Source: Diadema antillarum
Taxonomy: Eukaryota
Length of the DNA stretch: 64,000 nt
Direction: 5' to 3'
Assembly (NCBI RefSeq): GCF_040938485.1
Contig: NW_027270922.1
Coordinates: forward strand, 124,001 to 188,000
The translations under genes and the position numbers were made by a program. Below are positions 699 through 62,907 of this stretch, one piece after another. Positions within the stretch are counted from its first letter, which is position 1; each line of letters starts with the position of its first letter. Under the pieces are notes generated by a model. That model ran no database searches and was not told the origin of the DNA. It saw nothing but the letters and a program-made list of their open reading frames with translations.

Positions 699-1058
699 CA
701 GGAACGGACGCCCTCACAGTGTCAACTTCCATTCAAGGCCAAGGGGTCGTGGGGTTCACTGTGGTTATTAACTGCAAGTATGATCCACCGTCCAGCCATG
801 ATGCAATGAACGATAACCTGAGGTGGTTTGTTAATCAAACGGAGCTGGTAAGTTGCAAATTTGATGCAGCTTCGAATAAACCACGGTGTGACTCAAAGAC
901 GAACAGTTCAAAGTACTCATTTACCGCTAATGGCCTTTGTTGTGGGAGTATTACCATAAAGCGACTTACCGAAGACGACGAAAATACGTACACCTGCCTC
1001 GTAACCACCAGCGCTGGCATCAGTACCAGTAGGGTCATTCTCAACATCACACATCCCA
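699..1058 (+). CDS. Gene A exon: V-type Ig domain
   Basis: CAGCAG acceptor (start 699 or 702), A|GTAAGT donor; INCKY...LRWF...DENTYTC gives the canonical Ig Cys-Trp-Cys and DxxxYxC. Confidence 0.9.
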
Positions 1059-4000
1059 GTAAGTCTACCATTATTAGGTGGTGGCTAATTTTGCAAAACG
1101 ATGTGTGCTTTCAGTCAAAGTGTCAGAGCAATCAAGAGCGAACTGAACCTCGAGTTGGGGTTGAGCACTCCCAAAGTAAACCATGTCAGACATAACCGCG
1201 CCGCATCGAGTTTGTTTCACTATTGCCACATGCACCTGTTAAGGAGGATAGGGGGAAAAACATATAAATTACAAAATGAATCATTGCAACTTTTGTTGTC
1301 ATTAATCTTGCCTAACATAAAACGATAATGTATTTGTATATATATTTTATTGTAATTCAAGACATTTCACACTAAAACACAAAATGTGAAGTACTCAATC
1401 TGCCCCATATGAAACAAAGGAAAACCACAAATTCTTTTTCACATGTACAGAGACGCCAGGGTCATAGAGTTAGTAGCTGGGGGTGAGATGTAAGGGTCGA
1501 TCAATGTAGTGGGCGAAGTTGTATATCGCATCGTCTGGTGCAGGAATAGTAACTCAGTATTTTGACTTATTCTGATTTACAATGTGCTTTCCCCTGCTGG
1601 GGGGGGGGGGGGGTGTTTTGCCCTGCTTTTGCTATGGACTAGTAATAAAACGCTTGTCGTTCGTGTGAGCGTAAGTCCCCTAAAGCGCGAGTCTCACGCC
1701 TAGAAATGCATGAGACTTGATAGGTCTCCATGTATAGGCCTCCCTAGAGATACGATAGTGTATCCAGTATACAATCCTGAAATACAAGCACCATAATTAA
1801 AAATAATATTCCATCAATAGGATTAAACATATGAAACTCAATATATGGGATATTCACACACAAAAATGTGCTTTTCTTTCCTCATTCTTTTTTTTCCCAT
1901 GAATTTCCCATTCGAAGACCCTTTATACAAAGCTATAAGTCAGATACATGTATAATCTCACATGAGCGAAGCGTGAGGTACCCTTGCGGGACATTTTAGA
2001 AAAATGAGACTGCATGCTCCCGGCGAGATAGAAAAATCAGTCTGTTTTCTTCGGAGTTTTACATTTCATTTATCTATGTATTGTGACATCTGCGAGGCAT
2101 TCCTTGGAGCCAGAGGTAGTCTAAGCGGAACAAAACCCCGATGGTTTATACAGATTGATCTTTCGGTCTGTCTACTGGCCTGAACCGGTCCACGGTTAAT
2201 GTGGCAAGATTTGGATTGCTCTTGTTCGATCTAGTACAGTTCTTTTTATTTGGGACTGATGATTCCAGTTAATGTCCAACGTCGACATGGTTCATTTTGG
2301 GTGTCAAATGCCACACGATGATCATTACCAGTGAACAGTGAACAGTTATTGAACAGTAAACTTCACGTTATTGATGTGTGAGGCAAACACGTGCCTTGAT
2401 CTTCTGTTTAAACTCTTTGCATAATAGTGAATATCACATTTACATTCTTTACTTCGCGTAGCTCTTACTTTAGATGTATAAAAACAGTTGATCGATCTAG
2501 GAATCGCCTCTTCATTGTAGCAATCTTTGTGACTTGGTCTTTCATAAATTCGAGAAGTTATTGCATGAATTGCGCATTAATTTGATGTGAACGTTTTGTT
2601 TTATCACACCATAGACATGATAGAGAGTAGCTAGAGCATGCACTCATCTTTCTCCTAGATTTATTTGACATACAGCTTGCATCACCACCTGTCATGAAGT
2701 ATGGAGGCAATGAAAAGTATGTATTTTTTTCTATCAAAGGATTTGATACTCTATTATTTCCTGTGGTGCTTTTTGTCTTGGAATAAGTGAAAGGTATACC
2801 CGAGGAAAGGTATAACTTCATTGTCAAAAATCTTTTATGCATGTGCAGCTTTCTGTTTCACTTTGTCTCAACAACTCAAGAGCACATAGACATACCGCAG
2901 TTATATCCATCTATTTTGTATACCATTTCCCCTGATTACAAATGCGCTTAATGACCAGTTACACATTTTGCCTTTTTCATTGCTTGTACTTCTTCTTTTG
3001 TGTGTGTGTGTTTTTAGGTGATACGAGTATCCTCTCGGATCACCTTCTGTTTTTGTACGGATTCTTTCTTCTTTTTCTTCTTATTTCTCCGCAAAAGTTG
3101 TGCAGCGGTTAGCTCAGAAAGTGCTTGGTCTATTAAATTCAAACTTATACCACATGTATCATGTCCCAAAGACGACAGATCTAGTTAATGTTTTGTTTTT
3201 GCTTAAAAACAGCAAGATTGCCAGATACCGTGAAACTGACTGGTACTGACAACCTCCAAGTTAACCTATCTCAGGAGATCTCGTGCGCTTCTGTGCGCAG
3301 CTACCCTGCCCCGACTTTTCGCTGGTACATTGATACCCGAGAAGTCACTGCTGACGCCGAAACCCTCCCACCTGAGACCGATGGGCAGGGTGCGCGTGGA
3401 GGGGTCGTCAACGCAACGAGTATACTCACATACAGGCCTTCTCGAGAGGACCACGGGAGAACCCTGGTTTGCACGCTGAGTCTTTCCCTCTCGCCTTCCA
3501 AACTGACTTTTGTGAATTCTTCTGCAATCCTGGAAATTCACGGTTAGTCTGCAAAGCATTCTCCTCAATTTTCATAACTGTATCATTCTATTTGATTAGA
3601 CTTTCATTTTTATTATAACATGAAAATATACACCAGCTGCACACGGTGCAGTATACGAAATGAGACTATTACAAAGTAGACCTATATTACAGCATTTCTC
3701 TACAAATTTGTGAACCACCTTTTTTCGTATACAGTGTACTTGAGAGAAAAAAACAACAGTATAGGTTGATAAAACCGCAACGTTCTGTTTTAAAGAGAGA
3801 AGAAAGAGAAAAAAGTGAAAACGTAAGTGAACACAAATGCAAAAATAAACTGCAATGCGTAAATAAGAAAATTGTATATGATATGACTGCTTGATCTGAA
3901 TGAAGGCCTAAACATGCGGGTTCCCCAACCACTCTATACGGAAGAGCTTGCCGTGATTGTTGTGTCCTTTCTTAATTTACCGGTTATGAAAGTTATGAAC

Positions 4001-7000
4001 AAAGTGTGGGGCATGCTGAAGTATCTTTCAAGATGATTAATATCATACTTGTCTTAGAAGAGACTATAAGTATTAATATCATCAAAACATCTATCTTATC
4101 ATCCTCGAAATCCTTGTTCCTGATTCCTGGAACCCGCGATTACACAATATTTGCTTTTCCGGTTCCTTCATATTTCACATCTTAATTAGTATAGTGTTTT
4201 ATGTTGATATCGTACGATTACACACTTTCTTATCATGATCCACTGCATAATCTTACTTGTTTGCACTTTTTTGTTTAGTATATGTATGACATCAAAGTCA
4301 AGTGAAATATGGACATAAATGTGCTGGAACTGTCCACTGAGTCTCGAGTGTCAGACCGGTGAAGTTTTAGTAATTCAGCAATTCAATTCAAATCCACTGT
4401 GTGTCTGAAATCAAACATACTATTCTTTTCTGCCATAATCATGATAATGTTGTCGTTGCTGTTGCTGTTGCTGTTGTAATTGCAGGTTTTACCTCTATGT
4501 GAGTTCTAGCATAATGACTGTATACCCTCCCTTCTTGTAGATCCACCGTTAATATTTGACCCACAAGCCTCGACCAACTGGAGCGGTGAGAGTTGTACCG
4601 CCTCTCTGTCGTGCTCGTCAGTCTCTAACCCAACAGCTAATCACTTCCGCTGGGTCAAGGTTGGAGCAGAACGCATCTCTAACTCAAATCGGACTCGTCA
4701 CTTCATTCATGCTCCTGGAGGACTGGATGACAACGAGAGAATCGGAACACTTCTCATCGAGGACGTCCAGGCCTCCGACTACGGCTCGTATCAGTGCATA
4801 GCCTATGACGAGGACGGAGGGCGAAATTTGACGAGTGCGACGCTATCTCTTCTTAAACCCAGTAAGCGTATAGTATACAAATATACTTGGCCTTGAGAGT
4901 TTCTTGTTAAAACTATGGGCAGAGGTGACTCCAAACTAGTACTATTCACTGAGGGGCGCAGCCCCGAAGTGAATAGTACTAGTTTGGAGTCACCGAGGCC
5001 CATAGTTTTAACAAGAAACTCGAAACTAGGCAAAGTATATTTGTTTTATATTTTGGATCAAAAATTTGAATAAAAAGTGAAAATCATTATAGGCTTAGCC
5101 TAACCCGGGACGCTCCGTGTACACAGTTACACTGCAACACTGCGTGTTGTTACGTTGGGGCTGGTCGCAGTTCGGCTTAGCCGCACTGCGGCGGCAGCGC
5201 AGCGCCTGCAATACGCAACAGTGCGAGAGACCGGAAATTGAAAAACGTAGCAGCCGTGGCACCGCCAGAGTTGCCCGTCGCATGTATCCAAGCGCTCGTA
5301 TGGCCGCTGCAAACCTGAACACTAGAATTCGGGACCGGACGTGGACGGCCCACGTACACTTGATTGTAAAGGAAGGGTGATTGTGACATCATTTTGCAAA
5401 TAGTATATACTATTTGCAAAATGTCGTCACAAAAGTGACGTCATTTTGCAAATAGTACTTCATGGAGTGTCAAACACACCAACATTCTAAAATAGTTCAA
5501 AATACCTATAATCACGTGAAGCTCTTTTAACCAATCAATGGAAGACAATTTTTTGATCCAAAATATAATTATAAATAGAGTGGGTTGGGGAGGTTAAAGT
5601 GAAAGGGGAGGGGTCATGAGAAATTGTCCAACTCGAGTTTCTACAGATTTCTTCCTTGTGTATACTGATGCTGCTGTTACTGCCTTATCCTAATTCATGT
5701 CCGAGATCTTTTTCTTTTCTTCTTTTTTTTTTTGATCAATGAAATAATAGACTGGAGTAGGCCCATTTAGTAACATGAGGTTAAGCTTGTATTCTGAACT
5801 AATTAATCAGGATCGTCACCGACAACACTGCTTGCCCGAGTATCGCCCTATACCTGATGATTATAACGATAGCTAATGCACGGGTACTGCACTCAATAAA
5901 TTGAATGAAGTAATTTTAAGTGTATTTTGTATAGAAATAGATGACTGTAAGACTACCTGTTGTTTAATCCTGAAAGGGAAAATATAAAATAATCCTGGAA
6001 AAAAGTATTCTCCGTTACTGGTATTATCTACAACAAAAGGGAAGATGTATGGGTGGGACTTCGTGCTTGTCACAATCAAAATATGATCAGAACTGATTAT
6101 AAAATATCATCATCATTAATAGTACATTATATACATTATATCACATCACCAATGATGAAATATCACAATTAATTCTTCGCAGCAATCGCTGTATTTTCTA
6201 TAGAGCATATATGAATATACATATAATTATTTTGATTGTTATATATGATTTCCCATATACCAGGCAAGTCATACCCATCAAACATCACGACCTATCCAAA
6301 CAGAGCGACATCATCATCCATATATGTTGCTTGGCCACCAAACCATAATGACAGCATGAATGGCACTTGTAGAGTAGAATGCTGCCCTGACAATACGTCA
6401 GAGGAGGACTGCAAGACCACCACCAGTGCATCAGGTGCAAATACCACCTTGACCGGACTCCAGTCATTCACCTGGTATCGACTGAGTCTTAACTGTTCAA
6501 GCTGCGCTGGTTCCCTCAGCAGTCAATCCCTACTGGCATCGACAGCTCGTAAGGGTGATATTTAAGTTTTGGTTACCACACATTGAGAATCAAAGAATAC
6601 TTATGTCTTAGTATGAGATATAATTTTTTTTTTATTCTAAACCGTATAGGTCACTCTCTGTTACTTTGATATATCATATATTACCACCTATTTTATCTGA
6701 AACGATTCCCAAGCCTTTTCGTATCTAAGAGCAAATTTTAAGGTTATTTAATAATCATATATGGATAGCTCTTTCTCCCACTCTGTCCCTTGTATGTAAG
6801 TGTTCTATCTTTATTCTCAGTACTCAATATACATGATTATGATATGGTAGCTGCGATCTTCATAAATATTTTGCTGTATACAGTTTTGATAATCTAATCC
6901 AGTTTATTCATGTATATGCAGAATGTGGCATATGCAGAATCATGTGATAACTATGAGAAGATAAACATTAACAGGATTCTGTACCTCTGGCAATTACGAG

Positions 7001-10000
7001 AGTCTTGGGTAACCTGTACTTTACCAGCTATGCTTCCATGATTATTTGCTGTATAATATATCTCACTGAAACACAATGAGAAATTTCTGTCACTTAAAAA
7101 AAGTGTTGTAATAACATTTTGTAAGTATTTCTATGAATGTTTTGTAAATGTCCATTTGTATATCAATTATCAGGAGGAAATAGATGATCCAAATCAAATC
7201 AGTAATACTTAATTTATGTAATAGTATTTCATGAGAGTAGCATCGTTTGCAGTTTACTAAACGGTTTATACTTTAACATGTTTGATAGGAACTGAAAACG
7301 AAAGAAAATTAAATCTCAAAATGAATGAAGTCAGTGTAAAAAAAAGGTAACCACTTGAAAGTGATGACTGTGTTGAGGATTATCAACGCATGGATTGTTT
7401 ATAAAACAACCATTCTCAAAACGATTTCATACAAAGCAAACGTGTGTAAGTCATTGTAAGTGTTATGAGGCGATAAGACCATCAAGTTTTACTTTTTTTA
7501 TGCATGTGGTCATTATGGCCACTTTTGTGGTCAACATGGTCAACATGGCCACTAGGACTATTTCATGACAAGCATGTCAAAAAGATGTTCGAACTAATTT
7601 CTTCTCTTCCCGCTTTTTCCCATTTGTTTCTTGATCGTGATCAAGCCTTGCCACCTTTTGACTATGGTAAGTGATTTCATCGCTTTTAAAGGGCAATCTT
7701 TTTTTATTGGGGGGGGGGGGAGGGGGACAATCCATCCGAGCATTCCTTTGAAATATGAGATTAGCATTTTTGCAGTATGATATTTCATTCCAAAGAAAAG
7801 TACAGTGATGATAGTAATGCATTCTTATACCCTCGTGACTAAATGATTTGATTGCAATGCAACTGTAAGCATGATTGTCTAAATAAAACCCAGCAAAATG
7901 CGTGAAAATATTCATTGCCAGGCTTACAGGAGCATGAGCCGCGGTTGTATTTCCTCCTTACAGTAACACTGCCAGAGAACATTGGAGAATGGTGCAGTTT
8001 CTGGTTATTTCTTACTCTGGTATACATAGGGTCTGTTCATACTTCTTCTCATCTAATGCATGACTTCCGGCCAAGCATATTGTCTTTTCTTCTTCTTTTT
8101 TTATTCCCCTTCGTTTTATGTTGATGGCAACTCAATATTACAATATCATCGTTGACAGTTACACAATAGACACAAGCACAATCCGAGACTACACCTCAGT
8201 TCGTCTGCATTTAATAGTCTATAGCAGATGTCGTGATTATGGTTCCGTCAGACATAGAAACATTTCCGCTTCAATAAATCACAATCCGCTGTGATTTGCG
8301 GAAACTCTCTTGACCACTTGAGACGAAAGAAAGATAATGTATCGTGAAGAAAGAGTATGAAGCACGTGTATTGAAGACTCACAGTTTCGACTCTCTTGTT
8401 TACACATTGCGTGATAAGAATGAATGAAATCGATTGAATGCAGAAGTGGGAGAGTTGAGAGGTATCGTGACCGAATGCCCTGATCTCTGTTAGTTTGAAA
8501 GGACACAAAAAACCCACATGCATTCTCACATGCATACTAGCACATGCAATTACACGACACATACACGCAGTACATAATTTTTATGCTAAAATGAATGTTT
8601 TATATGCACATGCACCGGTTTGTGTATGTCTTGCGTGTGTGTGCATGCGTGCGTGAAAGATAGAATATCTTTTTTTTTTCAGTCTGCTTGTATACATTTT
8701 TCCTGTATCTATGTAGGAAAAACACGACACCATACAAAAACGTCCTTACTAATTAGAAACAACCTAATATGCACTTAATACATAGCTGCACAATTTTTTA
8801 AAACTTTTTTTCAAACTTCTAATTTACAGAGCATGTACCTCTTATCTCTTAAAGAAGAAAGACCTGCAGACAAGTTGCCCTTGTGATATTAGATACATCT
8901 AACTTGTTTCCCAAACCCGGAAATTCTATTATATGCAGTCAGTCGGATCAATTGCGAAAAACATTTAAAACTTCTTCTTTTGTGTTATTTTCTCTCTTTT
9001 TTTCAAGGCATCAAGCTTGAGTACGACCTGCCAAATGAAACTCTGAAATTATCAAAATCTTGGTATAATCTCACCGTGCCCGACGAGATTTGCTTCAAGC
9101 CTGTCGAGACTTTAGATCCTGCAGACTACTGTTTGAGAAACAATGACCAATGCGTTTCGGTTGGCTCCACTCTGCACAATGTGGTTCCCCTGAAGAGTGG
9201 GCTTGTAGGTGTCGTCAGCTACGGTCGGCAAACTTGCAGCGTCCCGTCTTTCGTGAAATATGAAAAAGGTTTGTTGATCACCATCGGAACAGCTTCACAA
9301 CCAGTCTAACACCAGTTTAACAAATTGGACCCATATGAGCCATAACACACATCAGTACTAAAGATAGAAGAATAAATGTCGTTGGCATGACCAGTTTGCA
9401 TGTGGCGGGTGAGAACTAGATATCTCTGGATGAAGACTCGATAATTACCTCCATGAACTCCACCCAGGGTTATTCATGTTTCATTTTAAAAAGTCGCTTA
9501 GTTTAAAGATGATATCTGCAACAGTTTGCAAAAGTTGTAAAAATCATCAGAAATCACCGCGTGAAAAATATCATTAGCTATTTCAATGAAAGTGATAGAT
9601 ATGCAAATTTGGAAGCAAAAACATTATTCATTCTCGGAGTGGATCTTAATCTGTTCTAAGGTTTTGAAATGACTGACCAGGGCCCTGTTTTATGAAGAGA
9701 TATAATTGATTATATAGTTGATATCTATCATAAGTCTGTGGCAGCCTGTGTGGTAAGGAAACTTATAATCGATTGTATCTTTTGATAAAACGGGGCCCAG
9801 ACTAAATATTTTTAACAGCCTCTTCATGAGAGATTTTCAAATTCTAATTAACGTTGTATAAACAAGACCCATGCAACAGGCAATGTATTATGATTTCCGT
9901 GAGCAATTATTCTTGCGTTCAGGGACATATGCATTATTTTGTAGTAATGCCCATGAATAATCTTGAACTCCACCAAAACATGTTAATATTGTATGAAGTT

Positions 10001-44552: not shown

Positions 44553-44837
44553 GCCAGTCATACCAACCAAACATCACGACCTATCCCGGCAGAGCGTCAT
44601 CATCCTCCATCTACGTTGCTTGGCAACCAAACCGCAATGACAGCATGGATGGCACAGGCAGAGTAGAATACTGCCCTGTTAATACGTCAGAGGAGGACTG
44701 CAACACCACCACCAGTGCGTCAGGTGCAAATACCACCTTGACCGGACTCCAGTCGTTCACCTGGTATCGATTGACTCTTAACTTTACAAACTGCTCTGGG
44801 ACTTTCACCACCCAACCCTTGCTGGCATCGACAGCTC
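44553..44837 (+). CDS. Gene C exon: FN3 domain
   Basis: GCCAG acceptor, C|GTAAGG donor, 285 nt open. Confidence 0.85.
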
Positions 44838-45331
44838 GTAAGGATGGTTTTCAATTTTTGTTTTCATAAATAGAGAATAATAAAGATAACTTTGTCTTAG
44901 GACTGTTTATAATCTAAATCATTTATCAATCTTCAGCACTCCATGAGTGGAGCATCGTTTGCAAATAGTTTTTACTGAACTGCTCATGCTTTCATCGGTA
45001 TTGAAGCGAAAGAATATTATATCCTTAATATACATGAGTTCTAGTCTTAGAAAATCCCCCAGAAATGACTTAGAAGGGATGACTGTGTAAAGTCACAAAA
45101 GTTTATCAAGGCCTGGATTGTTTAGATATTGAGAAAGAGATTCAGCATGATTTTATATCAAGCAGACGTACATCAATGTTGTGAGGAGATAAGGCTGTCG
45201 TCAAATATTATGTTTTTATGATTGACTGTTGGCAGTATCACTGCTTTATGGCAAGCATGCCAAAAAGGTTTTTGAAATTAATTCTTTTTTTTTGTTATTC
45301 TTATTCCATCTGCTTCATGATCATGATGAAG

Positions 45332-45352
45332 CCTTGTCACCCGCTGAATATG
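45332..45352 (+). CDS. Gene C 21-nt micro-exon (PLSPAEY)
   Basis: AAG|CCTTGTCACCCGCTGAATATG|GTAAGT; identical to B. Confidence 0.7.
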
Positions 45353-46436
45353 GTAAGTATTTTTATTGATAGTTTAAAAGCAATGTTCTTCTCTTTATAA
45401 TCCATCTCTTCTTAAAATATGTAACTAATATTTGTGCAATATGCCATCCTTAAGAACAACATACATGAACACGGTAATGTTGCTAGGAATGTATTCTTAT
45501 ATCCCTATGATTGCATGATCATCTTGTTTGCAATGTTAGTGACTGTGTAAACGAAACAAAAAAAATGGCTACCGGTCAGTTTTGCGAACTAATATGATAA
45601 ACTCGTGTATGAAAATTTGCATTATAAGACTTGCCAGTGCAACACTGATTTTATTGGCTGGCTGAATTTTATTTCTCACACTGCCAGAGAAAGGTACAGT
45701 AATGCCTGGTTGTGGCTTTCTGCTATAGGGTCTATTCTTTCTCATCTCGTGCACGGCTCCCAGCCAGGCATGTTGTCTTCTACTTTTTATTTCCCTTCGT
45801 TTCATTTTTAGTCGATGGCAACTTAGCATTATATTCTGAATAGTTATATCTTAGGCAAAGTTATTATGATGTACATGCAAATTTGTACACCTGGACCGCA
45901 TGCATAGAAGATCTGCTGCTGAATATGGGCTATCCATCCATTCTGTCAGAAACAACAACAACAACAACAACAAATCAAACACACAAACAATCGATACATA
46001 TTATTGTGTAGTCTTCCCCACACTGGTCATTCATCTATCATGTTTATGGTATATTTTTCATAAGCAGCAGCGAACATATTTTATCGTCTCACTTTTGGGA
46101 ATCTCCCCTTTCATTGTCAGACACACATCTAAAAATATCAAATCTGGATATCGTTCTCGATGGTAAGAATGACTTACAAAATCTGCAAATGTACGAACTT
46201 CTTTCGGCGCATGTGTTTCTTATCTCTTAAAGAAGAAAGATGCATAGGAACATCTCGTAACCATTTATCCAGAACAAGGCACTGACGATGTGTTTCACAG
46301 GTTTCCCTTGTGATATAGAGTATCTAACTTTAATAACCCTTCTCAAAATCCGGAAATTCTATAGCAAGAAGGAAGAGGGTCAATTCGGGTCAATTGTGGT
46401 AATCAATGGAAAATTCCTCTTTTTGCATTCTTAAAG

Positions 46437-46697
46437 GCATTCGTCTTGAGTACGACCTGACAAATGAGACTCTGACACTATCAAAATCTTGGTATAACCT
46501 CATCGTACCCGACGAGATTTCCTTCAAGCCTGTCGAGAGTTCAGATCCCGCAGACTACTGTTCGAGAAACAAGGACCAATGCGTTCCGGTTGGTTCCACT
46601 CTGCACAAAGTGGTCCCCCTGAAGAGTGGGTTTGTAGGCGTCGTCAGCTACGGTCGGCAAATTTGCAGCGTCCCGTCTTTCATTCGAGTTGAAGAAG
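46437..46697 (+). CDS. Gene C exon: domain X
   Basis: TTAAAG acceptor, G|GTCAGT donor, 261 nt; GIRLEYDLTNETL...ICSVPSFIRVEE. Confidence 0.85.
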
Positions 46698-46995
46698 GTC
46701 AGTACTTACTCATCTTGTAGAAACATCAGCACTGAAATCTCACCATGACAGTCAAAATTGACCCATATGAGACATAAGATATATTATTCCAACACTTCAG
46801 AAAACATAATAAATGTCGAGAGTGGTATTACAGAGCACATGAAAAACCAAGAGAACTGAGAACTGGTTATATCTCTGCGTGATGACTTTGATGGAATCTC
46901 CATACTGGAAAACCCCCAAGCTGGTGCTTATATGTCCCTTGTTTCACATGCTTATTTTTCACCTACTTCTAGTTGAGGGAAACCAAAGATTAAAA

Positions 46996-47004
<9 letters not shown>

Positions 47005-47042
<38 letters not shown>
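47005..47042. repeat. (TA)n microsatellite
   Basis: Direct reading. Confidence 0.95.
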
Positions 47043-47044
<2 letters not shown>

Positions 47045-48020
47045 AAACTTTATTCTTTGGCAGTAGTCATAATTACAAGTTCACGTCCATGAACTTTATA
47101 TAAACAGTCAGAGGCGTATACTTTCCGTAAAACATTATACTGTTCAGATACAAATGTTCCATCAATTTCGCTAAGAATATCTATCATGTTTGTAAGCAAC
47201 AGTTAACCTTACGGCAAGTTGTGGTCGTGAGAAAAAACATTGCGTGAAAGAAGGTGCACAACGTCTGTGTATAATATGTGAGCAGGTGTGCTTTGGAATC
47301 GGACAAGAGTGCTGGAATCTATAAATATGTTTTCGAGTGACATTATGAAGCTGAGAATATCCTTGAAACTTCAAAGAGCCTTCAAAGTACCCTGCGCTCT
47401 GTCACAATGGCTCACTTGTAACAATTATTGCCATTTCTTTTATTCTGTCTACATACAGATTTTGAAGAGGGTTGAAGGATATCTTGTGCATAATGGTTTC
47501 AGTTTCCTTTTTGCTGTTGACTAGATTGCGTTTATGGTATTCATACTGAATGAAGTTACAACTGATTAAAAAAGCCCAGCTTCCTGATAACACCATGTTT
47601 TTCACACAGATATAGGGTCTAAAAGTCATTATGATATTGCTGTTTATATCCATTTACAAAAATGTTTTTTCAAGTATTCAGGCCAGGTAATGGACGGTAA
47701 TCACCATAACTCTTTGCTGCATGTAATGCAAATTTGATATGATAATTTGACTGTTAATAATGGTGAAATCAATTATTTTGATGATATCTTCCAGCATACT
47801 TGCCATCATTATGACTATTATCATTATCATTGTTATCACTGTTACTATTATTATCGAAATACCTCGTCTTTTGTGTGTTTACTATACTCAAAATCATTAA
47901 TTAGTGCTCCTTGATCTAAATTCTTAGTGACTCATTCTTTTGTTATGCTATAATGATCTGCCCCATGATTCCAAGAAAAGGACAACTTAAAAGTTTGCAA
48001 TATGTTTTCTTTACCTGAAG

Positions 48021-48135
48021 TATCGACGGATATGGCGGCCTGGCCCATGATGACATTGACTACTGTCGTCGTTGGTCTTTCCATCGCTGTCATCGTCCTC
48101 GTCTCCGTCATCGTGGTCATGAAGACAAAACAACG
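48021..48135 (+). CDS. Gene C exon: alternative transmembrane segment
   Basis: TTACCTGAAG acceptor; VSTDMAAWPMMTLTTVVVGLSIAVIVLVSVIVVMKTKQ; donor CG|GTATTG (phase 2). Not in the ORF track. Confidence 0.8.
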
Positions 48136-48562
48136 GTATTGACTTTCGCTCACTCAATGGTCATATGCAACGACTTACAGAATCTGTGTCGCGTGAACAT
48201 GGGAATCACCTCTATATATTTGACCATTTTATTTCTTCATGTTACATCATGCTGTTGTCTGCTGTGTGATTGTCGTGCAGTAGACCTAAAGCAATTTTAG
48301 CACTTTTCAATTGTTCCCTCACTTTGTTCCTTTGCCCATGTTTAAATACTATCCGAATGCAGTTCTCTTTGTAGCGTCTCTCGAAAAAGGATATCAAAGG
48401 AAATATTCTGTTTGCCAGTTTCGGAGATTTGGAAGGAAAAAGTGCTAGTACTTCTGCGTCTGTGTCGGCTCATTTTGCATTAGCTGTGTGTCTCTACGTG
48501 CTTTTTTTGTACCTTTGAATATGTGATGTGAATACGCTTGTGCAAGCCTGTGTTACGGCATT

Positions 48563-48699
48563 NNNNNNNNNNNNNNNNNNNNNNNNNNNNNNNNNNNNNN
48601 NNNNNNNNNNNNNNNNNNNNNNNNNNNNNNNNNNNNNNNNNNNNNNNNNNNNNNNNNNNNNNNNNNNNNNNNNNNNNNNNNNNNNNNNNNNNNNNNNNN
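48563..48699. other. Assembly gap (137 N) in the intron between gene C TM and tail exons
   Basis: N run. Confidence 0.95.
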
Positions 48700-49334
48700 G
48701 TTTAATTAGTTAAAGTTTTTAGCATTCTGCAGCATTGAAATGGTCTCTCTATATGTTCACGAGTCTGTGTCTATTTGGTTCTTGTGTAGACTCGTTTGGA
48801 ACGGTCTTGTAAAAATTCTATGCTTAAGTTATGTGTATTTGCGTTTTCTGATAACGACTCCGAACCTGCGTAAATAATGGACAATTTTGTTCAATTTACT
48901 AGACATACTAAAAGCGGCCATTTTCTGATTTTTTTTTTTGTGGTGATAATATAAATTGTGATTATCAACTTTGACACTCCTAATAACACAGAGCATTTAA
49001 CTTACATGCAATGTATTATAACTAAAATAGTGTAAATCTCATGTAATGAGATGTGCTGGTTTTACTGCCTTACTAAATGAAAATGAAATCAATATCTAAC
49101 ATGCCATTGCGTTGCGCAGGAATTTTCGTCTTCAAATCTTGTTGCCTTTGTTTTCATTTCTAACGTCTTATACTTTTAATACATAGAGTGAAAACTGATC
49201 TTATGTATAGGAACTGTTTCTCTTTTTGGTAGCATTGTAGTGAATAATGGAAAATAAGATATGATTCGCATTATTGAAAAACATGAAAACAACAATTACA
49301 TGTCGAATTCGATGTGTTCATCATGTATATTCAG

Positions 49335-49761
49335 GAAACAAAACAATGGTACCGGGCCTTCCGAGAAGACGTCCGTCAATGATTCCGTAACATCACTCAA
49401 GCTCGCCGCAGTCAATACGCCCTCGAACTATGTAAGTCTCGATTCAGCGACGCGTAGTCATTCCGAATACGCATCTCTGTATGACACTGCAGCAGGACCA
49501 ACTCGGCCAGATGTTACTAGTCAAGCCCAAACCGACGTCATCAGCGACATCGTCTCGGATAACAACTATGAGACGAGGATCAGAGTGACGCCCGGTGATA
49601 AAGGTTTTGCAGTTTATGATGTTCCCGTCAACAGCCAGGTCAACGAGCGGTCGCATGAAGAAAGACCGATCGGGGATTCTGATTACGTCGACATCGTAGA
49701 TGGACGGAGAGATATTACGTTTAGAAGCATTTTAACAATAATAACCACACCAGCGCAGTAG
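49335..49761 (+). CDS. Gene C terminal exon: cytoplasmic tail with ITAM-like YVSL-x9-YASL, YDVP and SDYVDI
   Basis: ATTCAG acceptor is phase 2, matching the TM exon donor (CG+G = Arg); open to TAG 49759-49761. The junction spans an N gap in the intron. Confidence 0.75.
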
Positions 49762-50827: not shown

Positions 50828-51958
50828 CAGCGGATTCCCGTTATCACGAAGTCCTCGGAACCGGCAGTTTTCTTTCGTTATATCGAAATTTCGTTATATC
50901 CGAACAAATAAACAATAAAAATACATAGAGAGGAACAAGGATGTTTGCTATCGCCGACACTCTTCAAATGTTTTCCTTGAAAGAATCATGGCAGACGCAC
51001 TTGAAGACCATCAAGGAACAGTCAGCATTGGTGTTGGTGGCAGAACAATCACAAACCTGCGTTTTCCGGATGATATAGATGGACTCGCAGGCTCGGAACA
51101 AGAACTGGAGAACCTGGTCAGGTAACTACACAGATCCTCCACAGCTTACGGCATGGAAATCAATGCAAACAAAACAAAACTGATGACAAATAATATAAAT
51201 GGAATCCAAACTGACATCACTGCCAACGGAGAAAAGCTTGAAACCGTGAAGAACTTCAAATACCTTGGAGCAATAGTTTCAGATGAGGGGTCCAAACCTG
51301 AAGTATTAGCCAGAATTGCAATGACAGCTGCAACACTTGCTAAATTGAACATCATTTGGAAGGACAAGACAATCAAGCTCATCTCAAAAATAAGACTCTT
51401 GCGTTCCCTTGTCCACTCAGTTTTTTTCTGTATGCTTGTGAAACATGGACTCTTACAGCAGAATTAGAGAAGAGGGTTCAGGCCTCAGAAATGAGATGCT
51501 TCAGAAGACTGCTTGGCATCTCTTACAAAGATCACATATGACCAATGGGGTAGTCAAAAAACAGAATAAGGCAAGCCATTGGTCCGTATGAAGATCTTCT
51601 CACCACCATCAAGAGACGCAAACTAAAATGGTTCGGCCACGTAACAAGAAGAGATGGGCTTGTCAAGACAGTACTCCAGGGAGCAGTCAGAGGAGGAAGG
51701 AAGAGAGGAAGACAGAAAAAGAGATGGGAAGACAACATCACAGAATGGACAGGACTGAAGCTGAGCGAAGCGGTCACTCATGCGAAGGACAGGGAAGGAT
51801 GGAAAGGACTGGTTGCTAGGTCATCTGTAGCGCCCCAACGGCAACCGCCATGGGGCAGGTGAGGTGAGGATAGAGAGGAAAACGTTGCGTCCATAATTTT
51901 GACTTCGTTGTAACCGGAATTTCGTTATAACCGTCTTCGTTATAACAGAAATGAACTG
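50828..51958. mobile_element. TA-flanked MITE (Tc1/mariner-pogo-like, about 190 bp net) split by a LINE insertion
   Basis: TA-CAGCGGATTCCCGTTATCACGAAG ... CTTCGTTATAACAGAAATGAACTG-TA. Confidence 0.6.
50936..51869 (+). mobile_element. 5'-truncated, frameshifted RTE-clade non-LTR retrotransposon (reverse transcriptase C-terminal fragment)
   Basis: Begins QGCLLSPTLF, continues GRTITNLRFPDDIDGLAG...INANKTKLM...FKYLG...LKWFGHV...RGRQKKRWED; GTGAGGTGAGG tail; 11-bp TSD ATAGAGAGGAA (50925-50935, 51870-51880). Confidence 0.9.
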
Positions 51959-53926: not shown

Positions 53927-53973
<47 letters not shown>

Positions 53974-53975
53974 AT
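53900..53975. repeat. (CA)n microsatellite
   Basis: Direct reading. Confidence 0.95.
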
Positions 53976-55140: not shown

Positions 55141-55685
55141 GCGCCGAGGCGACGGTGCAGACAATAAGAAGATATTAAAAAGGAAGAGCACTCAGTAGGA
55201 AGATATTAAATATGTAGAGCACTCAATAGGAAGATATTGATGTACGGAGTGAAATACAACATACCAGAGTTTATTGTCATGTCTGTAGACTGAAACAAAT
55301 ACACCTTCTTCTCATATGGCACAGACCATGATAAAAAAGCACTTGAATGCTAAGCAACAGATTATGATATCAGTCGAGTGGGCTGCGACACCTTTTCACA
55401 TGTACGACGCATGCTATCTTTCAAACCACAATATTACATTGGTTGTGCTGTGGAATAGGCCTACACTATAAAGATGTAGTGTTTGCATTGCCTACAAATG
55501 CAGCATAAGTGAATTCGGAAAAATTTCATTGCGAACAAAATAGTTCATCGAGAGCAGGAAGTGGTCGCTGCCAAGAGGCAAGTGTTAAAGGCAACTATAC
55601 AGCGCAGTCTTAGTATGCTTTGCTTTACTTGAGACCACACAGTATTATGCAGACTGAGGGGATGAGGCATCGCGGAACTATCATT

Positions 55686-55749
55686 ATGAAGACCAGTACC
55701 TTGGCATTCCATTTGATCGTCTCCTTGATCTTACCCTGCATCTCGGAAG
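55686..55749 (+). CDS. Gene D signal-peptide exon (MKTSTLAFHLIVSLILPCISE)
   Basis: 64 nt, G|GTAAAC donor; homologous to 18825-18888. Confidence 0.8.
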
Positions 55750-58700
55750 GTAAACGTCGTAGTAACTGCCGATTATCTATACACTAACGACATGTTTGAT
55801 ACCTATTTCAAAAGATATTTTCTCCTATAATTCCATTGATCCGTCTTTTCATTTGTTGTGGGGGATGACACGTGTTGACGTTTAGTCATAACCACTTGCA
55901 TTCCAGCAATATGTAGGCCTATAATTTGTTCCACCGAAGAATGCCCATTCTCATCTGAATGATAACAATGCATATTATGACATATGGAAAATCGTTAAAG
56001 GGTAAATTGCAAATTAAGATAACTTATCCATTGAATGTTTTGAAAAAGATATTAAAAAGTCTGGTCGATCATCTACTTATCACTAGTCGTAATGAAACAA
56101 AATACAATAGGAATTTCATTTCTGCTGGAAGTAAAGTAAATTCATATCTCTTGACTATTTTATGTCCATAGGAAAGATCTAACTGCACTTATACCTGATA
56201 TACCAGACTATATAATAACAGGTGTATACTGTCAGAAAGCTTCATACTATTTTATGCTTCATAACTGTCCTCCTTTTTTTCTAACAGTATCGGAGCGCAG
56301 AGATTTTGGTACTGTTAAGTACTAAACCTTCAACATTTAATGTCTTACAAAAGAAAACCTTAAAAAGATAGGAAACAGGAAAACAACTGTAAGATCTCCT
56401 GGGACAAGGAAAGTATAATGATGATGATGACGGTGGAGGATTATGTAAAAAATAGAGCTCGTTAATATTGACGGGTTCATTGCCATGATAGTCAACAGTT
56501 TTTTTCTCCTGCATTCTTACCAACATAACTACGTATAAAAAATGTTTTGCATTACATTCAATCCAGCTTGTATTTTATCACTTATTTTACATTATGAAAT
56601 CCAGATTGCTTGCGTCCACGATGGCACATGCTGTAGTTCCCTCTTTTTTCTCCCTTTTTTTTCCTCTCTTTTTTTCCTCTTCTTTTTCCTTTCCTTTTCT
56701 CTCTTTTTCCTCTTCCCAATCATTTTGATGTCAGTTGACATCGGTTCGTTTATTGTGTTTTATATTGATGTTTTGTGTATTTTTCTGAGGGTCCCATATC
56801 GTACAAGCTTTGCTTCTTAGTGGGACCCTCCACTTCCATCCTCATCCTTAGTTGACTTGTATTATACGCTTTATGTATTTAACAAAGATGTAATCACATC
56901 TACTTTTCACTTTCATAATTTTCTTATGTACCTTTTCAAGTTTTGTTCTGTATCACAAATATCCCGTGTATACGCAATGTACATAAAGTTCTTTGTTCAT
57001 TTTGATGGAGGTGAAAATAAAGTTGAAAGTTGAAAGTTGAAACACCAAGTTCGTTTATATTTTTGTTGTTGTTGTTGTCTTCAGAAAGGAGTGAATTTAC
57101 AGTGTCTACTTCCGTTCAAGGCCAAAGAATCGAGGGGTTCGAAGTGGTCATAACTTGCACGTATCATCCTCGCTCCATCCCAGAGAAGTTCTCTAGCCTG
57201 CAGTGGTTTGTTGATGGCAGCAAGTTGGGGAGTTGCAGGCGTAATGACGGTTCCAACGAAATACGGTGTAGCCCAAAGATGGGGTACAGTTCCAAGTACT
57301 TCTTCACAGCTGATGGCGTATGTTGTGGGAACATTACCATACATCGACTCACCAAAGACGATGAAAAGACATACAGCTGCCAGGTAGGCACCGAGGATGG
57401 AATCGGACTGAGTGACGCTCGTCTCACCATTATACATCCCCGTATGTTCACCTTTACTTTATTACGATGCAATGGCTACTTTTTCCAAAACAATGTAAAA
57501 GCGCTATTATGTGAATACATGATTAGTATAATCACTGGCGTATTCAGGGAAGTGGGAGAGNNNNNNNNNNNNNNNNNNNNNNNNNNNNNNNNNNNNNNNN
57601 NNNNNNNNNNNNNNNNNNNNNNNNNNNNNNNNNNNNNNNNNNNNNNNNNNNNNNNNNNNNNNNNNNNNNNNNNNNNNNNNNNNNNNNNNNNNNNNNNNNN
57701 NNNNNNNNNNNNNNNNNGCCTACATTCACATGCATGTGACAATTATACATTTTTCTTTTTATTGATGTACCCCGAATTCAACTTTTAGAGTTACATTTGT
57801 ATCAATTGCTTGTATCCATGTTGTTTTGTGATGACTTTTATACTTGTATGGTTATGAAATATCTTTTTTATGCCAATGTAACATTTTGTATGATGAAATG
57901 TGCATCTGTGCATTTGGTCACCAGTCAAATTTTTTAATAAAGACCTTTTCAATCAATGTACGTAACGCACATATATGATTTTTGTGGACTATAATTATGT
58001 ACATGTATTTCCAGTATGTACAAGTATATCAGTTACATAATTATAAAGATGTACAGTGTGGATAATACTGTGAACACACATTATCATGCCTGCGTATGTT
58101 ATTAGCTCAGCCAGAGTTCTCGAAGACAGATGAAATCAATTCCTTGCATCCATGTATAATGTGCATGTCTATGTATGTGTATATAGACACATAATAGGCC
58201 TACATACATTATAATCTTATACATATTACATTATTTCCTATCCCGCTCAAGAAGTAGTTTACAGGCCTGCTGCAAGTTTTTATTGTACATTTTGCCTATT
58301 ATACCTGCTGTTTTTGTTTTTTATGATCTTTCCTTTAAAATGAGAAGGGCTTCCGTATACACATGAGTTGACTGGTACTGACAACCTCCAAGTTAACCTA
58401 GCTCGGAACATCTCGTGCACTTCTGCGGGCAGCTACCCTGCCCCGACCTTCCGCTGGTACATTGATACCCGAGAAGTCACTGGTGACGCCGTAAGCCTCC
58501 TACCCGAGACCGATCGTGCCGATGGGCAGGGTGGACGTGGAGAGGTCGTCAACGCAACGAGTATTCTCACTTACAGGCCTTCTCGAGAGGACCACGGGAG
58601 AACCCTGGTGTGTAGCCTGAGTCTTTCCGTCTCGCCTTCAAACATGACTGTTTTCAATTCTTCGGTCATCCTCGACATCCAATGTGAGTTTCAAGGCATT

Positions 58701-61275
58701 CTTCTCAATTCTTTCTTTAAAGAGATGGATCACTGAATGTTTAAGTCGATATTTATACACAGTAAAATCTAACGAATCTAACGAACAGTTGAGAACCAAT
58801 GATATCGCAGGCAAACTCATTGCCTAAAATTATATAGGGGCCAAACTAAAGTCACGATGTTATCTTCCATGATATTTATAATGTAAGCATGTAAGATAAT
58901 AAAAATTAACAACTACGACCTCGTACTCACTATGGCCAACATAGTTGTATCACAACACCCATGCAATCGCTGATGGAATGGGGAAATTAATCTCTGTTTT
59001 CATTAAAAACAAATTTGGGTTTCGATCAATTGGAGACTTGTAATTCCACGGTATTTTCATTATTTCTGTTATGTCTACGTTCAGTAAAAACATTTAAAAC
59101 CGACCTGATGTTATCATCCAATGCCAAATCTTGACAGAATATCACCTCACAGTGTTCTGCTTACTTACATTTGTTTTATTAATAAAAATGTACATCAAAA
59201 CCGAATAAACAATTAAGTGGCTCTGCGGCTCATGCTCAAGTGTCCTAAGCGTTCTGTAATAAGTATCCTCATTGAAAATAATGTGAATCTGAGTGAAAGT
59301 ACAAACCCTGTCAACTCGACGCAAACAGATTTACTATACGGAATTGCAACGCTGGCACGTTTGTTCCTATATCGTATATACACGTACATGTATTAAATCA
59401 TGAAAACCGCACCATTGAATGAATGGTCTTGCTAACGGTTCCTTTTCAGCGTTCGCACTATACTTGATATGAAAGTCAAGTCGATGTAGGGCAATTTGTC
59501 AATCAGCTGCAAAGTCACGTCAGTTTCGAAATCTTAACGGTGCTTCCATTGCTGTGTTGCTTCACATGCAGGAAATGATTATATTACCGAGCTTTAGATC
59601 TGGGACCCGAACGCTGAGACGAGACGAATGTCTCGCATATGTGCACAACACCAATTTTGGCCTATATTTTTGGGTACCATTTTATCTAAGACGTTCAGTT
59701 TACGTCTTTATATTCATGACGAAACGTAATATTAAAAAAAAAGATCGCATTAACTCATGTAAATCAGTACCAAAAACACGCTTTTCATTGTTGCTTTTCA
59801 GAAGTTCCCACTCACGCAGCTATACAGATAATCATTTCTATTTTTACTTTGGATGCCTGAGAAGGCATGGTTGTCAAACACACATACAAACAAACACACA
59901 CACATACACACACAGACATAACTTTATAATATGCCGTATAGCTACATATATTGTATAATGTAAAAGAAGAATAAAAGGTTTTCTTTTTCCTTTAAAAAAA
60001 ACTCTAGTTTCTTTTTTCCTATACCTTGCCGAACTCTCTCGTAGATCCACCGATAATCTTCAGACCTAAAGCATCAGCGAACTGGACCGGTGAGAGTTGT
60101 ACTGCCTCCCTGTCGTGCTTGTCGGACTCTAACCCACCAGTTCATCACTTCCGCTGGGTCAAGGTTGGGACAGAACGCGTCTTCAATTCAAGTCGGACTC
60201 GTCATTCCATTCGTGCTCCCAGAGGATTGGATAACAACGAGAGAATCGGAATACTTCTCATCGAAGACGTCCAGGCCTCCGACTACGGCTCGTATCAATG
60301 CATAGCCTATGACGAGGACGGGGAGCAAAATTTGACGAGTGCAAAGCTATCTCTTCTTAAACCCAGTAAGCGCAAAATATAAGATACCTATGTTATTATA
60401 GAGGTGGGGGAAGTATTGAAGAATGTATTACTATCATTTTTTTTTTTTACTTGTCTTGATCAAGAAGGGGAAATATCTGTGTTTTCGAAAACATAGTTAA
60501 CAAGTCCTTTGGGGTTGGTTTTATGCATGTTAAAGGGGAAGACGTGACGCATATACAAAAATTGGAAATTACTAAATTTCGTGCTTGACATTATCAATAA
60601 TGGAGATATTGACTGGAATGGACAATGACCAAATGATCGCGATTGTCAAGTAATGTCAGAATAATTGTTACTGCACTTTACGCGAGACAGAATCATTGGT
60701 GTATCAATCTCAGATTTGAGTAAAATCTTTGAATGCTAGTTTTATTACACTCTGCAAGGAGGAAATAACATAATTATTTGTTTACAGCAAATGTAGTAAT
60801 TCTTCCTTCAAAGGCGACACGAATGATTATATTCTGGTGATTTCCCAAGGCCAGTTATACCGACCAAACATCACAGCATATCCCGGCAGAGCATCAGCAT
60901 CCTCTATCCACGTTGCTTGGCAACCAAACCGCAATAGCAGCATGGATGGCACTGGCAGAGTAGAATACTGCCAGTTTAATACGTCAGAGGAGAACTGCAA
61001 CACCACCACCAGTGCATCAGGTGCAAATACCACCTTGACAGGACTCCAGTCATTCACCTGGTATCGACTAACTGTTAACTTTACAAACTGCTCTGGAACT
61101 TTCAGCACTCAACCAATGCTGGCATCGACAGCTCGTAAGGATAACCCCACATTAGTTATTTCCCACGGCGAAATAATAGAATGTGCCTTTAAACGATATA
61201 GGGTATAATATATTATATTATGACCTATGTTTCAGTCTAAGTGTATTTATAATTATTTGTGTTTGTGTGCATTTG

Positions 61276-61310
<35 letters not shown>

Positions 61311-62907
61311 TGTGTGCATGTGTGTGTCATTACGCATTTTAAGCAATTCAGAGAGTCGAATGCAATTAGCTACAAGATTTACTTACTTCGATAATACATG
61401 TAACACTCCTTGATTACTATATTGGATAGCGTATTCTTTTGCAAACAAGCTGGTACAGGTTTCATGGTCTATGGGAATTCAAAAAAGAAAGACATTTTTG
61501 TCCTTTATTATATAGGTTTTCCCGCCCAATTGTATCACATTTACATTAGAATTAATGAAAAGGCGTTCAAATTCAAGCGATATTGGCCGCCGCTCTTCTC
61601 TCACGGTTCATTTCAATTCTTCAATTTTCGCACCAGCTGGATAGACGTTCAATTTCGTCCCAATTACCAATTTCATTTTCATTTTTTAGGAATATAACTT
61701 CGCACTTGGAAATTTCAAATTCGACCAACATGAGAGGTTCCTATGCGTTTCAACGGGTCCTTTCTTTTTTTTCTCTCTCTTTGATACATTGGATTACTGT
61801 CTACAATTACATTTTAATTTCAAAGTTTCATTTAATCAGTTTAGTCTAATATTTATATTGTCTGCATAATCTTGTCTTCCAATCTTTGTCTTCAAATTAC
61901 CCCATTATACCATCGATGTAACATTAAGAGAATGGCTGTATCTCAAAATTTTGTCTACATTCAAATATTCATTTTGATTCCATTCCCACCTTGTCCGTGT
62001 CCATATCATAAGTTGCTACAATCGGCTCAGTTGCAGACCTGTTTCACCCAATTAAGGGTTTCGCTATATAGTGATGTAGTCTTGCTAGTTGTCAAAAGCT
62101 TCGCCCACAAATTCTGTCTGTATTCAAGATATTCATGTATACTCTTCTCTAGTAGCGTCAAAGTCGTGTATTATAATGTACGTGTATGTGTTTCAAAGAG
62201 AAGTTATACGAGCTTTTATAGGCCCTTTATAGCTACTGTAAGGCTAAAGTCCTATTTCAAGGTACATTAAATTTGTGTGTTCAAATAGACGAGTAACTAC
62301 GAAGAATATAACAGACAACGAAAAATACTGCTCGTATGTTGTAAATGTTTGTCTTATCGTGACTTTGAATTCCTAGCCTTCTTCCCGACGATGCTGATTG
62401 GAATTTGAATGCGCTGCTCGTGCATTTTTTGATTTGAACGGCCTTTTAACATGTTTATTTTGTTTTTGGAAAACTCACTAAATCGCATGTTGATGAAATT
62501 GAATTGAAAGAACTAGTTACCGTACTTTTTTAATGTTGATCTCGGTAATCATTCAAATTCACTCAAGCTTGAATGATCCCATAGTTAAATCGAATGAAAA
62601 TGTAATGAAATTAGACTGGAAAATTTATCTAAAAGGATTCTATGGTTGGTAATGGTTCAAAAGTGAAGACTGTGCAATGTTGAGAGGGACACGTGCTGAA
62701 TTATTAACAAAAAGACTAGTGATAAGGCCTATACATTGTACCAAGGAATATTGTGGGACGATGACGTCATCGCCAAGTCTAATTTGTATTTCTGACTGAG
62801 ACAGATATTACTGCTTTATGATTTGAAGCTAATTCCTTTTGTTCTGATTTTTTTTCTCTCTCATCGTCACCATGATCATGATGAAGCCTTGTCACCCTTT
62901 GAATATG
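55686..62907 (+). CDS. Gene D (3'-partial): IgSF receptor; join(55686..55749,57085..57441,58345..58683,60045..60365,60850..61134,62887..62907,>64000)
   Basis: Same exon order, phases and splice sites as A-C. Domain X, TM and tail are not reached within the window. Confidence 0.85.
57085..57441 (+). CDS. Gene D exon: divergent V-type Ig domain
   Basis: CTTCAG acceptor, C|GTATGT donor; ITCTY...LQWF...DEKTYSC. Confidence 0.88.
57561..57717. other. Assembly gap (157 N)
   Basis: N run in gene D intron 2. Confidence 0.95.
58345..58683 (+). CDS. Gene D exon: C2-type Ig domain (3-aa insertion)
   Basis: TGAG acceptor, T|GTGAGT donor, 339 nt (330 plus CGTGCCGAT). Confidence 0.85.
60045..60365 (+). 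CDS. Gene D exon: third Ig domain
   Basis: CTCGTAG acceptor, A|GTAAGC donor, 321 nt. Confidence 0.9.
60850..61134 (+). CDS. Gene D exon: FN3 domain
   Basis: CCCAAG acceptor, C|GTAAGG donor, 285 nt. Confidence 0.88.
61278..61325. repeat. (TG)n microsatellite
   Basis: Direct reading. Confidence 0.9.
62887..62907 (+). CDS. Gene D 21-nt micro-exon (PLSPFEY)
   Basis: AAG|CCTTGTCACCCTTTGAATATG|GTAAGT. Confidence 0.7.

Follow-up and report, generated by a model that had tools for sequence, protein, structure and literature searches.

The window analysed here, a 64,000-nucleotide stretch of the Diadema antillarum genome (JBFRCO010000034.1:124001-188000, + strand), carries a real and well-supported tandem cluster of what its sequence indicates to be fast-evolving, nectin-like immunoglobulin (Ig) receptors with inhibitory-type tails. 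Self-BLAST and exon alignments identified four collinear paralogues on the + strand, designated A to D; gene E lies further along the same contig, and S1 to S3 denote copies from Diadema setosum. The tail found in A and B is termed type I, and the transmembrane (TM) and tail exons of gene C are termed type II. The position on the contig follows from a locus retrieved with the NCBI protein XP_071509270.1, which matches 24876-33729 of the window at 100% and occupies 148876-157729 of JBFRCO010000034.1. Coordinates are window positions unless a contig is named.

The tails of A and B consist of two exon-encoded modules, each comprising an immunoreceptor tyrosine-based inhibitory motif (ITIM) followed by a site resembling an immunoreceptor tyrosine-based switch motif (ITSM). 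The module exons are in phase 0-0 and 50% identical to each other; the four sites are LIYVAV, TIYSAV, LVYFSV and TIYSSY, with their tyrosines 25, 19 and 26 residues apart. An earlier note on this DNA had described these tails as ITIM/ITSM tails, and that description holds. Across six copies from two species, none of the four motif tyrosines varies, and LIYxxV, T/I-x-YSxV, LVYFS, TIYS and the C-terminal LYAT are invariant or nearly so, while the six tails are only 53-62% identical overall; the fourth site reads TIYSSY or TIYSNV among the copies. Sites of the consensus forms [ILVS]xYxx[ILV] and TxYxx[VI] are therefore present in the cytoplasmic tail and conserved among relatives, and three ITIM-consensus sites, as in the A tail, were reached in 0.6% of shuffled sequences. 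Between A and S1, the ratio of nonsynonymous to synonymous substitution rates (dN/dS) of the tail is 0.06 (dN 0.014, dS 0.218); by this measure, strong purifying selection acts on the type I tail. The C-terminal residues are SSKQKQF in A and B and FKENKA in E.

The mechanism that we consider most likely, with moderate confidence, is that the V domain binds in trans and that phosphatases then dock on the two ITIM/ITSM pairs. Like the V domains of the nectin family, that of the Diadema receptors would engage a cell-surface ligand by homophilic or heterophilic contact; Src-type kinases would then phosphorylate the four tail tyrosines, and each ITIM/ITSM pair would dock the tandem SH2 domains of an SHP-2-type phosphatase. 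The docked phosphatase would damp signalling in the receptor-bearing cell, in a manner that resembles SIRP-alpha, PECAM-1 and CEACAM1. Gene C would be a family member that acquired different TM and tail exons and has since been inactivated. For the family as a whole, we infer an immune or allorecognition role.

Gene models and the ectodomain

The plan of these genes is a signal peptide, a V-set domain, a CD80-like C2 domain, a third Ig domain (Ig3), a fibronectin type III (FN3)-like domain, a 21-nt microexon, an 86-aa domain X, a TM segment and a tail. The ectodomain exons are all in phase 1-1 with AG/GT borders in four-way alignments; the microexon encodes a 7-residue linker, PLSPxEY, and is common to A, B, C and D; and the signal-peptide exons of B, C and D lie about 1.2 kb upstream of the V exons. 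The splice junctions match the NCBI protein models P0001, P0002 (XP_071509270.1), P0008, P0009 and P0010, and NCBI models guided the placing of the microexon, of an 83-nt juxtamembrane exon and of the signal-peptide exons. The earlier note had assigned the complete plan, from signal peptide to TM, to all four genes. The four paralogues were recovered as described, but the X-TM portion was found in three of them only, and the signal-peptide exon of A falls outside the window.

When the models were spliced, gene B gave an open frame of 732 aa over 11 exons, which includes P0010 and P0002 exactly. The frame of gene A, which here begins with the V exon, runs open over 709 codons to its stop and contains P0001 (core) and P0008; by analogy with gene B, the signal-peptide exon of A would lie off the left window edge, about 1.2 kb upstream of position 702. 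The frame of gene D is open for 470 codons. The three genes comprise the following features.

702-12920, + strand: gene A, with a type I tail, from exon alignments with AG/GT borders
Gene A ectodomain exons, + strand: V 702-1058, C2 3213-3542, Ig3 4541-4861, FN3-like 6264-6548, microexon 7646-7666, X 9008-9268
Gene A TM and tail exons, + strand: TM 10803-10937, cytoplasmic 11405-11487, module 1 12204-12335, module 2 with stop 12714-12920
18825-32729, + strand: gene B, complete, with a type I tail; 11 exons, all with AG/GT borders
Gene B ectodomain exons, + strand: signal peptide 18825-18888, V 20099-20458, C2 23654-23983, Ig3 24767-25087, FN3-like 25784-26068, microexon 27376-27396, X 28698-28958
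Gene B TM and tail exons, + strand: TM 30623-30757, cytoplasmic 31220-31302, module 1 32019-32150, module 2 32523-32729
55662-62907, + strand: part of gene D in the window
Gene D exons, + strand: signal peptide 55662-55749, V 57085-57441, C2 58345-58683, Ig3 60045-60365, FN3-like 60850-61134, microexon 62887-62907
10655-10796, no strand: N run in the X-to-TM intron of A; flanks collinear with B at 30281-30490 and from 30617 onward
57561-57717, no strand: N run in the V-to-C2 intron of D; locus L001 of contig JBFRCO010001134.1 is collinear on either side

Neither X nor TM exons of D occur in 61135-64000; the gene can be traced to its microexon, and the remainder lies past the window end. A candidate D signal peptide, 'MKVETPSS...LLLL' joined to the V exon, was rejected as a translated polypyrimidine tract, the real signal-peptide exon being at 55662-55749. 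Directly upstream of the V exon of A, positions 225-677 form an AT-rich low-complexity tract with imperfect internal repeats of about 80-125 nt (69-77% identity), which yields long spurious open reading frames (ORFs) on both strands. Between C and D, a 104-aa ORF on the + strand (51153-51467; KTKLMTNN, FKYLGAIVSDEGS) resembles, judged by eye, the C-terminal part of a reverse transcriptase of the long interspersed nuclear element (LINE) type.

With that of gene C, described below, the window holds three N runs, which were kept as N in the gene models. They are probably masks, because the assembly, GCA_040938485.1, is reported to be gap-free. All three are intronic and leave coding sequence untouched; exon phases agree across each, and the flanks are collinear with gap-free paralogues. 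The run in A stops 6 nt before the TM exon, such that the acceptor AG at 10801-10802 is readable and the polypyrimidine tract is not; B has 126 nt at the site of these 142 N.

Self-comparison showed that A and B form a 19-kb tandem segmental duplication (A about 660-19500, B about 20080-39700) with 69-93% identity, introns and intergenic DNA included, whereas C and D share only exons with the other copies. The 3' halves of A and B, from the TM exon to about 3 kb past the stop (10797-15862 versus 30617-35625), are 99-100% identical in exons and introns alike, and the 5' halves 79-93%. Such a tract suggests recent gene conversion or unequal crossing-over that homogenised the signalling end and left the ectodomains diverged.

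Pfam places all three Ig domains above threshold (V-set, E 5e-8; CD80-like C2-set_2, E 7e-12; Ig_3, E 4e-12), and fn3 falls below it on the FN3-like exon (E 2e-4; 21.9 bits against a cut-off of 25). The solved structures nearest to P0009 are nectin-3, CADM4 and nectin-1 (E 3e-9 to 4e-8), and the nectin-1 alignment spans all three Ig domains (P0009 residues 46-304). The N-terminal models are named 'cell adhesion molecule 3-like' by NCBI. In the identity matrices, V is the most divergent domain, its two lineages (A/B/C/S1 and D/H/E/S2/S3) being 46-57% identical, while C2 and Ig3 are 72-89% identical throughout the copies. Pairwise dN/dS is below 1 almost everywhere and highest in V (0.3-0.85). 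Because the FN3-like exon of C is 95% identical to that of E, while its V and X exons are A/B-like, the genes of this family are mosaics.

Domain X gave no Pfam match at E values up to 1, nothing better than E 0.4 in a profile search of the PDB, and no profile similarity to the FN3-like domain of the same family in hhalign. AlphaFold2 modelled it with low confidence, both alone (8-sequence alignment; mean per-residue confidence score, pLDDT, 47.6) and in the FN3-microexon-X tandem (pLDDT 39.8); both models are all-beta, at a confidence too low to name a fold. X may thus tentatively be regarded as an orphan cysteine-containing all-beta domain. Two assignments were rejected. A language-model search placed X nearest to fn3 clusters at 0.85-0.89, below the level that is meaningful by itself. 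The X segment DQCVSVGSTLHKVVPLKSGFVGVVSY recurrently matches He_PIG Ig-like repeats of a 2617-aa metagenomic protein; the Pfam He_PIG model has no match to X, and the likeness was taken as a strand-turn-strand motif.

Several further observations concern the automatic models. P0001 begins at an ATG (MEAMK) in the V-C2 intron of A (2701-2716) and omits the V exon; P0010 runs past the Ig3 donor of B into the intron (SKRINRVGWGG*, 25088-25122); and P0002 begins at a Met within the FN3-like exon, with the same split in D. setosum models. These split models could be annotation artefacts or represent a genuine short secreted V-C2-Ig isoform. P0009, which models gene E, leaves out the 21-nt microexon even though the FN3-X intron of that gene holds an intact copy with AG/GT borders (locus L002, 16808-16825); the microexon may therefore be alternatively spliced.

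Gene C and the type II tail

Gene C was identified over its full length, with the features listed here.

38486-49761, + strand: gene C, full span including the signal-peptide exon
38486-38548, + strand: signal-peptide exon of C, with a unique 1-nt deletion in an alignment of 8 signal-peptide exons
40240-49761, + strand: body of C, with V 40240-40605, C2 pieces 42742-42765 and 43091-43397, Ig3 43514-43834, FN3-like 44553-44837, microexon 45332-45352, X 46437-46697, type II TM 48021-48135, type II tail 49335-49761
42766-43090, no strand: transposon-like insertion of 325 bp within the C2 exon of C
48563-48699, no strand: N run in the TM-to-tail intron of C; the phase-2 donor fits the acceptor, and L001 is collinear on both sides
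49426-49476, + strand: 'ITAM-like' stretch N-Y-V-S-L-DSATRSHSE-Y-A-S-L in the type II tail (ITAM, immunoreceptor tyrosine-based activation motif)

Two lesions disable this gene. The deletion in the signal-peptide exon (TTTT to TTT) leaves the canonical donor in phase 0, where the V exon needs phase 1, and translation of the joined exons ends at a stop after 27 codons. In the C2 exon, the acceptor at 42740-42741 is intact, and in the four-way alignment the 325-bp element interrupts the exon 24 nt later, so that reading from C2 into the element meets a stop after 14 codons. The element has terminal inverted repeats (TAGGGAGCTTTAGATTTT..., 18 nt perfect and about 33 nt at 94%) with TA at both ends; it resembles a miniature inverted-repeat transposable element of the Tc1/mariner-Stowaway type, and no second copy was found in the window or in seven other loci searched. 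None of A, B and the D. setosum copy contains the element, and its removal leaves the C2 exon as an intact frame of 333 nt. With both lesions set aside, gene C reads open over 708 codons, which dates the damage as recent. Judged by its reading frame, then, gene C is inactivated twice, and very recently, in this haplotype. NCBI calls no gene at this position, and dN/dS of the C2 exon is about 1 in comparisons with C (0.74-1.16). Three rescue routes were considered: a cryptic donor GTTATA, 10 nt downstream in the signal-peptide exon, would restore phase 1, though it makes a poor donor; use of a cryptic acceptor at 43115 would cost C2 its first strand; and skipping of the symmetric C2 exon would preserve the frame.

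The TM and tail exons of C are unrelated to type I, and the tail exon carries YVSL-x9-YASL, as the earlier note had reported for this gene (an unrelated tail with YxxL-x9-YxxL). Nor does this tail come from a different gene: because the exon phases match across the TM-tail junction and P0003, a model of a paralogue, joins the homologous TM and tail exons, its assignment to gene C is credible. The YVSL codons hold a perfect splice-donor consensus, TAT/GTAAGT (49432-49437); splicing there would close the exon at the first tyrosine and make the remainder of the tail part of an intron.

What is not supported is the proposal, made in the same note, that the two tail types signal in opposite directions, with C as the activating member. 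Such a true paired-receptor system, in which type II members (C, the L001 gene and perhaps D) activate through an ITAM-like motif, type I members inhibit, and the broken C is a null allele on this haplotype, appears unlikely. The spacing of 9 in the C motif lies outside the canonical ITAM range of 6-8 and fits only definitions that allow 6-9 or 6-12, among them the one applied to Hydractinia Alr, Yxx[IL]x(6-9)Yxx[LI] (PMC9546547). A relaxed ITAM arises in only 1.3% of C-tail shuffles; however, both of its tyrosines, together with a third site, also fit the ITIM consensus S-x-Y-x-x-L/I (SNYVSL, SEYASL and SDYVDI), and three such sites arise in 0.3% of shuffles. The type II TM (TLTTVVVGLSIAVIVLVSVIVVM) has no charged residue. 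Type II exons do occur behind both V lineages, since C has an A/B-like V and the L001 gene a D/E-like V, and the swapping of tails on similar ectodomains is therefore recurrent. The L001 tail, on JBFRCO010001134.1 behind a D-like ectodomain, is nevertheless the sole other copy, and it is frameshifted and truncated: it carries 8 extra nucleotides at the first tyrosine and has lost the second to an 11-nt deletion; there are also a 53-nt deletion and further indels, one of 2 nt, and the tail ends SNYYSM. A search of proteins of 78-247 aa gave no homologue of the type II tail, and the D. setosum segments that were fetched showed no type II exon. The long open frame of C would suit a recently lost allele, but because the gene is frameshifted and transposon-interrupted, it is no evidence of a working activating partner.

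Extent of the family and weighing of the explanations

Searches beyond the window returned essentially this genus alone. The X profile, run against 1.84 billion representative proteins, recovered three Diadema clusters (E 5e-53 to 1e-27) and two weak matches judged spurious; apart from one weak match in a fish, word-seeded searches with members of 424 aa and 731 aa returned proteins of D. antillarum and D. setosum only. The proposal that this is a lineage-specific family without a name agrees with these results, and among the proteins searched the family is so far seen only in the genus Diadema. On JBFRCO010000034.1, the array of predicted type I membrane receptors extends over 120 kb or more and counts at least 6 genes; one of them is gene E at contig 227-243 kb (full-length model P0009, 731 aa), with another type I tail just upstream. 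In D. setosum, at least 4 family genes lie on OZ188202.1 at 31.41-31.62 Mb, in a cluster that has type I tails.

A number of points weigh against receptors that diversify at the V domain and inhibit through their tails. The pairwise V-domain dN/dS of 0.3-0.85 indicates relaxed constraint and does not demonstrate positive selection. In A and B, TIYSSY at the second ITSM-like site deviates from T-x-Y-x-x-V/I. The 100% identity of the A and B tails lies in the conversion tract, which includes introns (99-100%, against 79-93% further upstream), and is no evidence of constraint because the flanking introns are equally identical. The automatic NCBI models cut most of the genes into N-terminal and C-terminal proteins, P0009 being the sole full-length model. 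Finally, orthologues of SHP-2 and of Src-family kinases are presumed to be present in Diadema, as in sea urchin genomes in general.

We consider it quite unlikely that these genes are instead a lineage-expanded nectin/CADM/nephrin-like adhesion family that acts in tissue architecture or neural wiring, in which the tyrosines would be general docking sites and no immune or self/non-self role would exist. Such a family would be in keeping with the nearest solved structures (nectins, CADM4, SYG-2 and CD166), the automatic name 'CADM3-like', language-model feature neighbours that include nephrin and VSIG10-like proteins, and an overall dN/dS below 1. However, the tails lack the afadin-type, PDZ or band 4.1 motifs that define nectins and nectin-like molecules (Necls) (PMC7286890), ending instead in KQKQF or KENKA, and the family is confined to one genus in protein searches. 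Tandem expansion, shuffling of exons and tails, and a pseudogene are typical of fast-evolving recognition loci rather than of conserved adhesion genes, and the ITIM-ITSM pair, spaced at 25-26 residues and present twice, is a specific arrangement for docking phosphatases.

A parallel array is present on JBFRCO010001134.1 (L008, 2268685-2290787; L001, 2323419-2348946), with a gene spacing like that from A to D. It contains an A-like gene that is 91-96% identical to A, introns included; the gene after it has a 2-nt insertion in its signal-peptide exon; and about 41 kb on lies a D-like gene that is 72-84% identical to D and has the truncated type II tail. The assembly totals 1.73-1.75 Gb, where the haploid genome is estimated at 0.70 Gb; 84% of its BUSCOs are duplicated, and its authors later showed it to be an uncollapsed diploid. 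The parallel array is therefore probably the other haplotype, possibly a deeply divergent one, with paralogy as the alternative. An echinoid self/non-self or 'missing-self' complex strikes us as quite unlikely as well. In it, nectin-like receptors with double ITIM/ITSM tails of the SIRP-alpha kind would use a diversifying V domain to bind polymorphic ligands or one another, partners with alternative tails would come and go between haplotypes, and the two arrays would represent two haplotypes of a single animal that differ in structure and diverged deeply, much as KIR/LILR and allorecognition loci do. A tandem cluster of inhibitory-type receptors that would be engaged in trans and act through phosphatases is the explanation that we retain.

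Comparison with known receptor systems

ITIM/ITSM-bearing multigene families of the Ig superfamily (IgSF) are the core of vertebrate innate 'checkpoint' recognition. To our knowledge, such families have been described outside vertebrates in a few invertebrates only, for example as Hydractinia Alr and the Botryllus fester-type genes. The Diadema family is not described in the two D. antillarum genome papers, nor did it appear in full-text searches on echinoderm and invertebrate ITIM receptors. It is a new domain combination on a known kind of receptor, and we found no named family to which it belongs. As a conserved, clustered sea urchin family, it would offer echinoderm immunology a concrete candidate for inhibitory cell-cell recognition, namely a SIRP-alpha-like double phosphatase-docking tail on a nectin-like ectodomain with an orphan domain, in a species that has suffered two disease-driven mass mortalities (PMC13511894). 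The present work also provides usable full-length models of A and B and a partial one of D, in place of a fragmented automatic annotation, and indicates that the 'activating' partner is not to be taken at face value.

The ectodomain is most like that of the nectin/CADM/PVR group, which shares the N-terminal trio of V-set, CD80-like C2 and Ig domains (by Pfam and by the nectin-1 match over three domains). Nectins have three Ig domains and then the TM, whereas in the Diadema proteins Ig3 is separated from the TM by the FN3-like domain, the microexon and the 86-aa X. Nectins have a cytoplasmic PDZ-binding C-terminus and Necls have band 4.1 and PDZ motifs, while PVR too carries an ITIM in place of adhesion-type tail motifs (PMC7286890). 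The Diadema tails lack PDZ and band 4.1 motifs; a pair of duplicated exons supplies their four ITIM/ITSM tyrosines. The family resembles nectins only remotely (E about 1e-9, low identity), which amounts to likeness rather than demonstrated orthology.

In the vertebrate receptor SIRP-alpha, the tail has two tyrosine pairs with an ITIM-ITSM spacing of about 25 residues. The Diadema proteins resemble SIRP-alpha, PECAM-1, CEACAM1 and PD-1 as single-pass IgSF receptors with a V domain, predicted to be ligand-binding, and with an ITIM followed by an ITSM at 25 and 26 residues, twice. They differ in their domain plan and show no detectable homology to these receptors in tail or ectodomain, and their recruitment of phosphatases is predicted.

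At the level of the locus, the likeness is to the KIR/LILR, SIRP, CD300, Siglec and CEACAM clusters of vertebrates, with which the Diadema array shares tandem paralogues, similar ectodomains, interchangeable TM and tail exons, conversion tracts, a pseudogene and, probably, structural differences between haplotypes. The activating partner in the vertebrate clusters has a short tail and a charged TM residue for an ITAM adaptor, whereas the TM of C is uncharged and the alternative tail in Diadema is ambiguous between ITAM and ITIM and decaying in both copies seen. Among invertebrates, the comparison is with Hydractinia Alr, likened here by description and not by alignment. Alr belongs to another phylum, is marked by six invariant cysteines in its I-set/Fn3-like tandem, and is without the CD80-like C2 domain and X; in a language-model feature search, the top match of P0009 was 'Allorecognition 2' (score 0.95, taken as a lead only). 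As in Diadema, the Alr family combines tandem V-set, Ig and Fn3-like membrane-proximal domains with invariant cysteines, ITAM or ITIM tails and common pseudogenes (PMC9546547).

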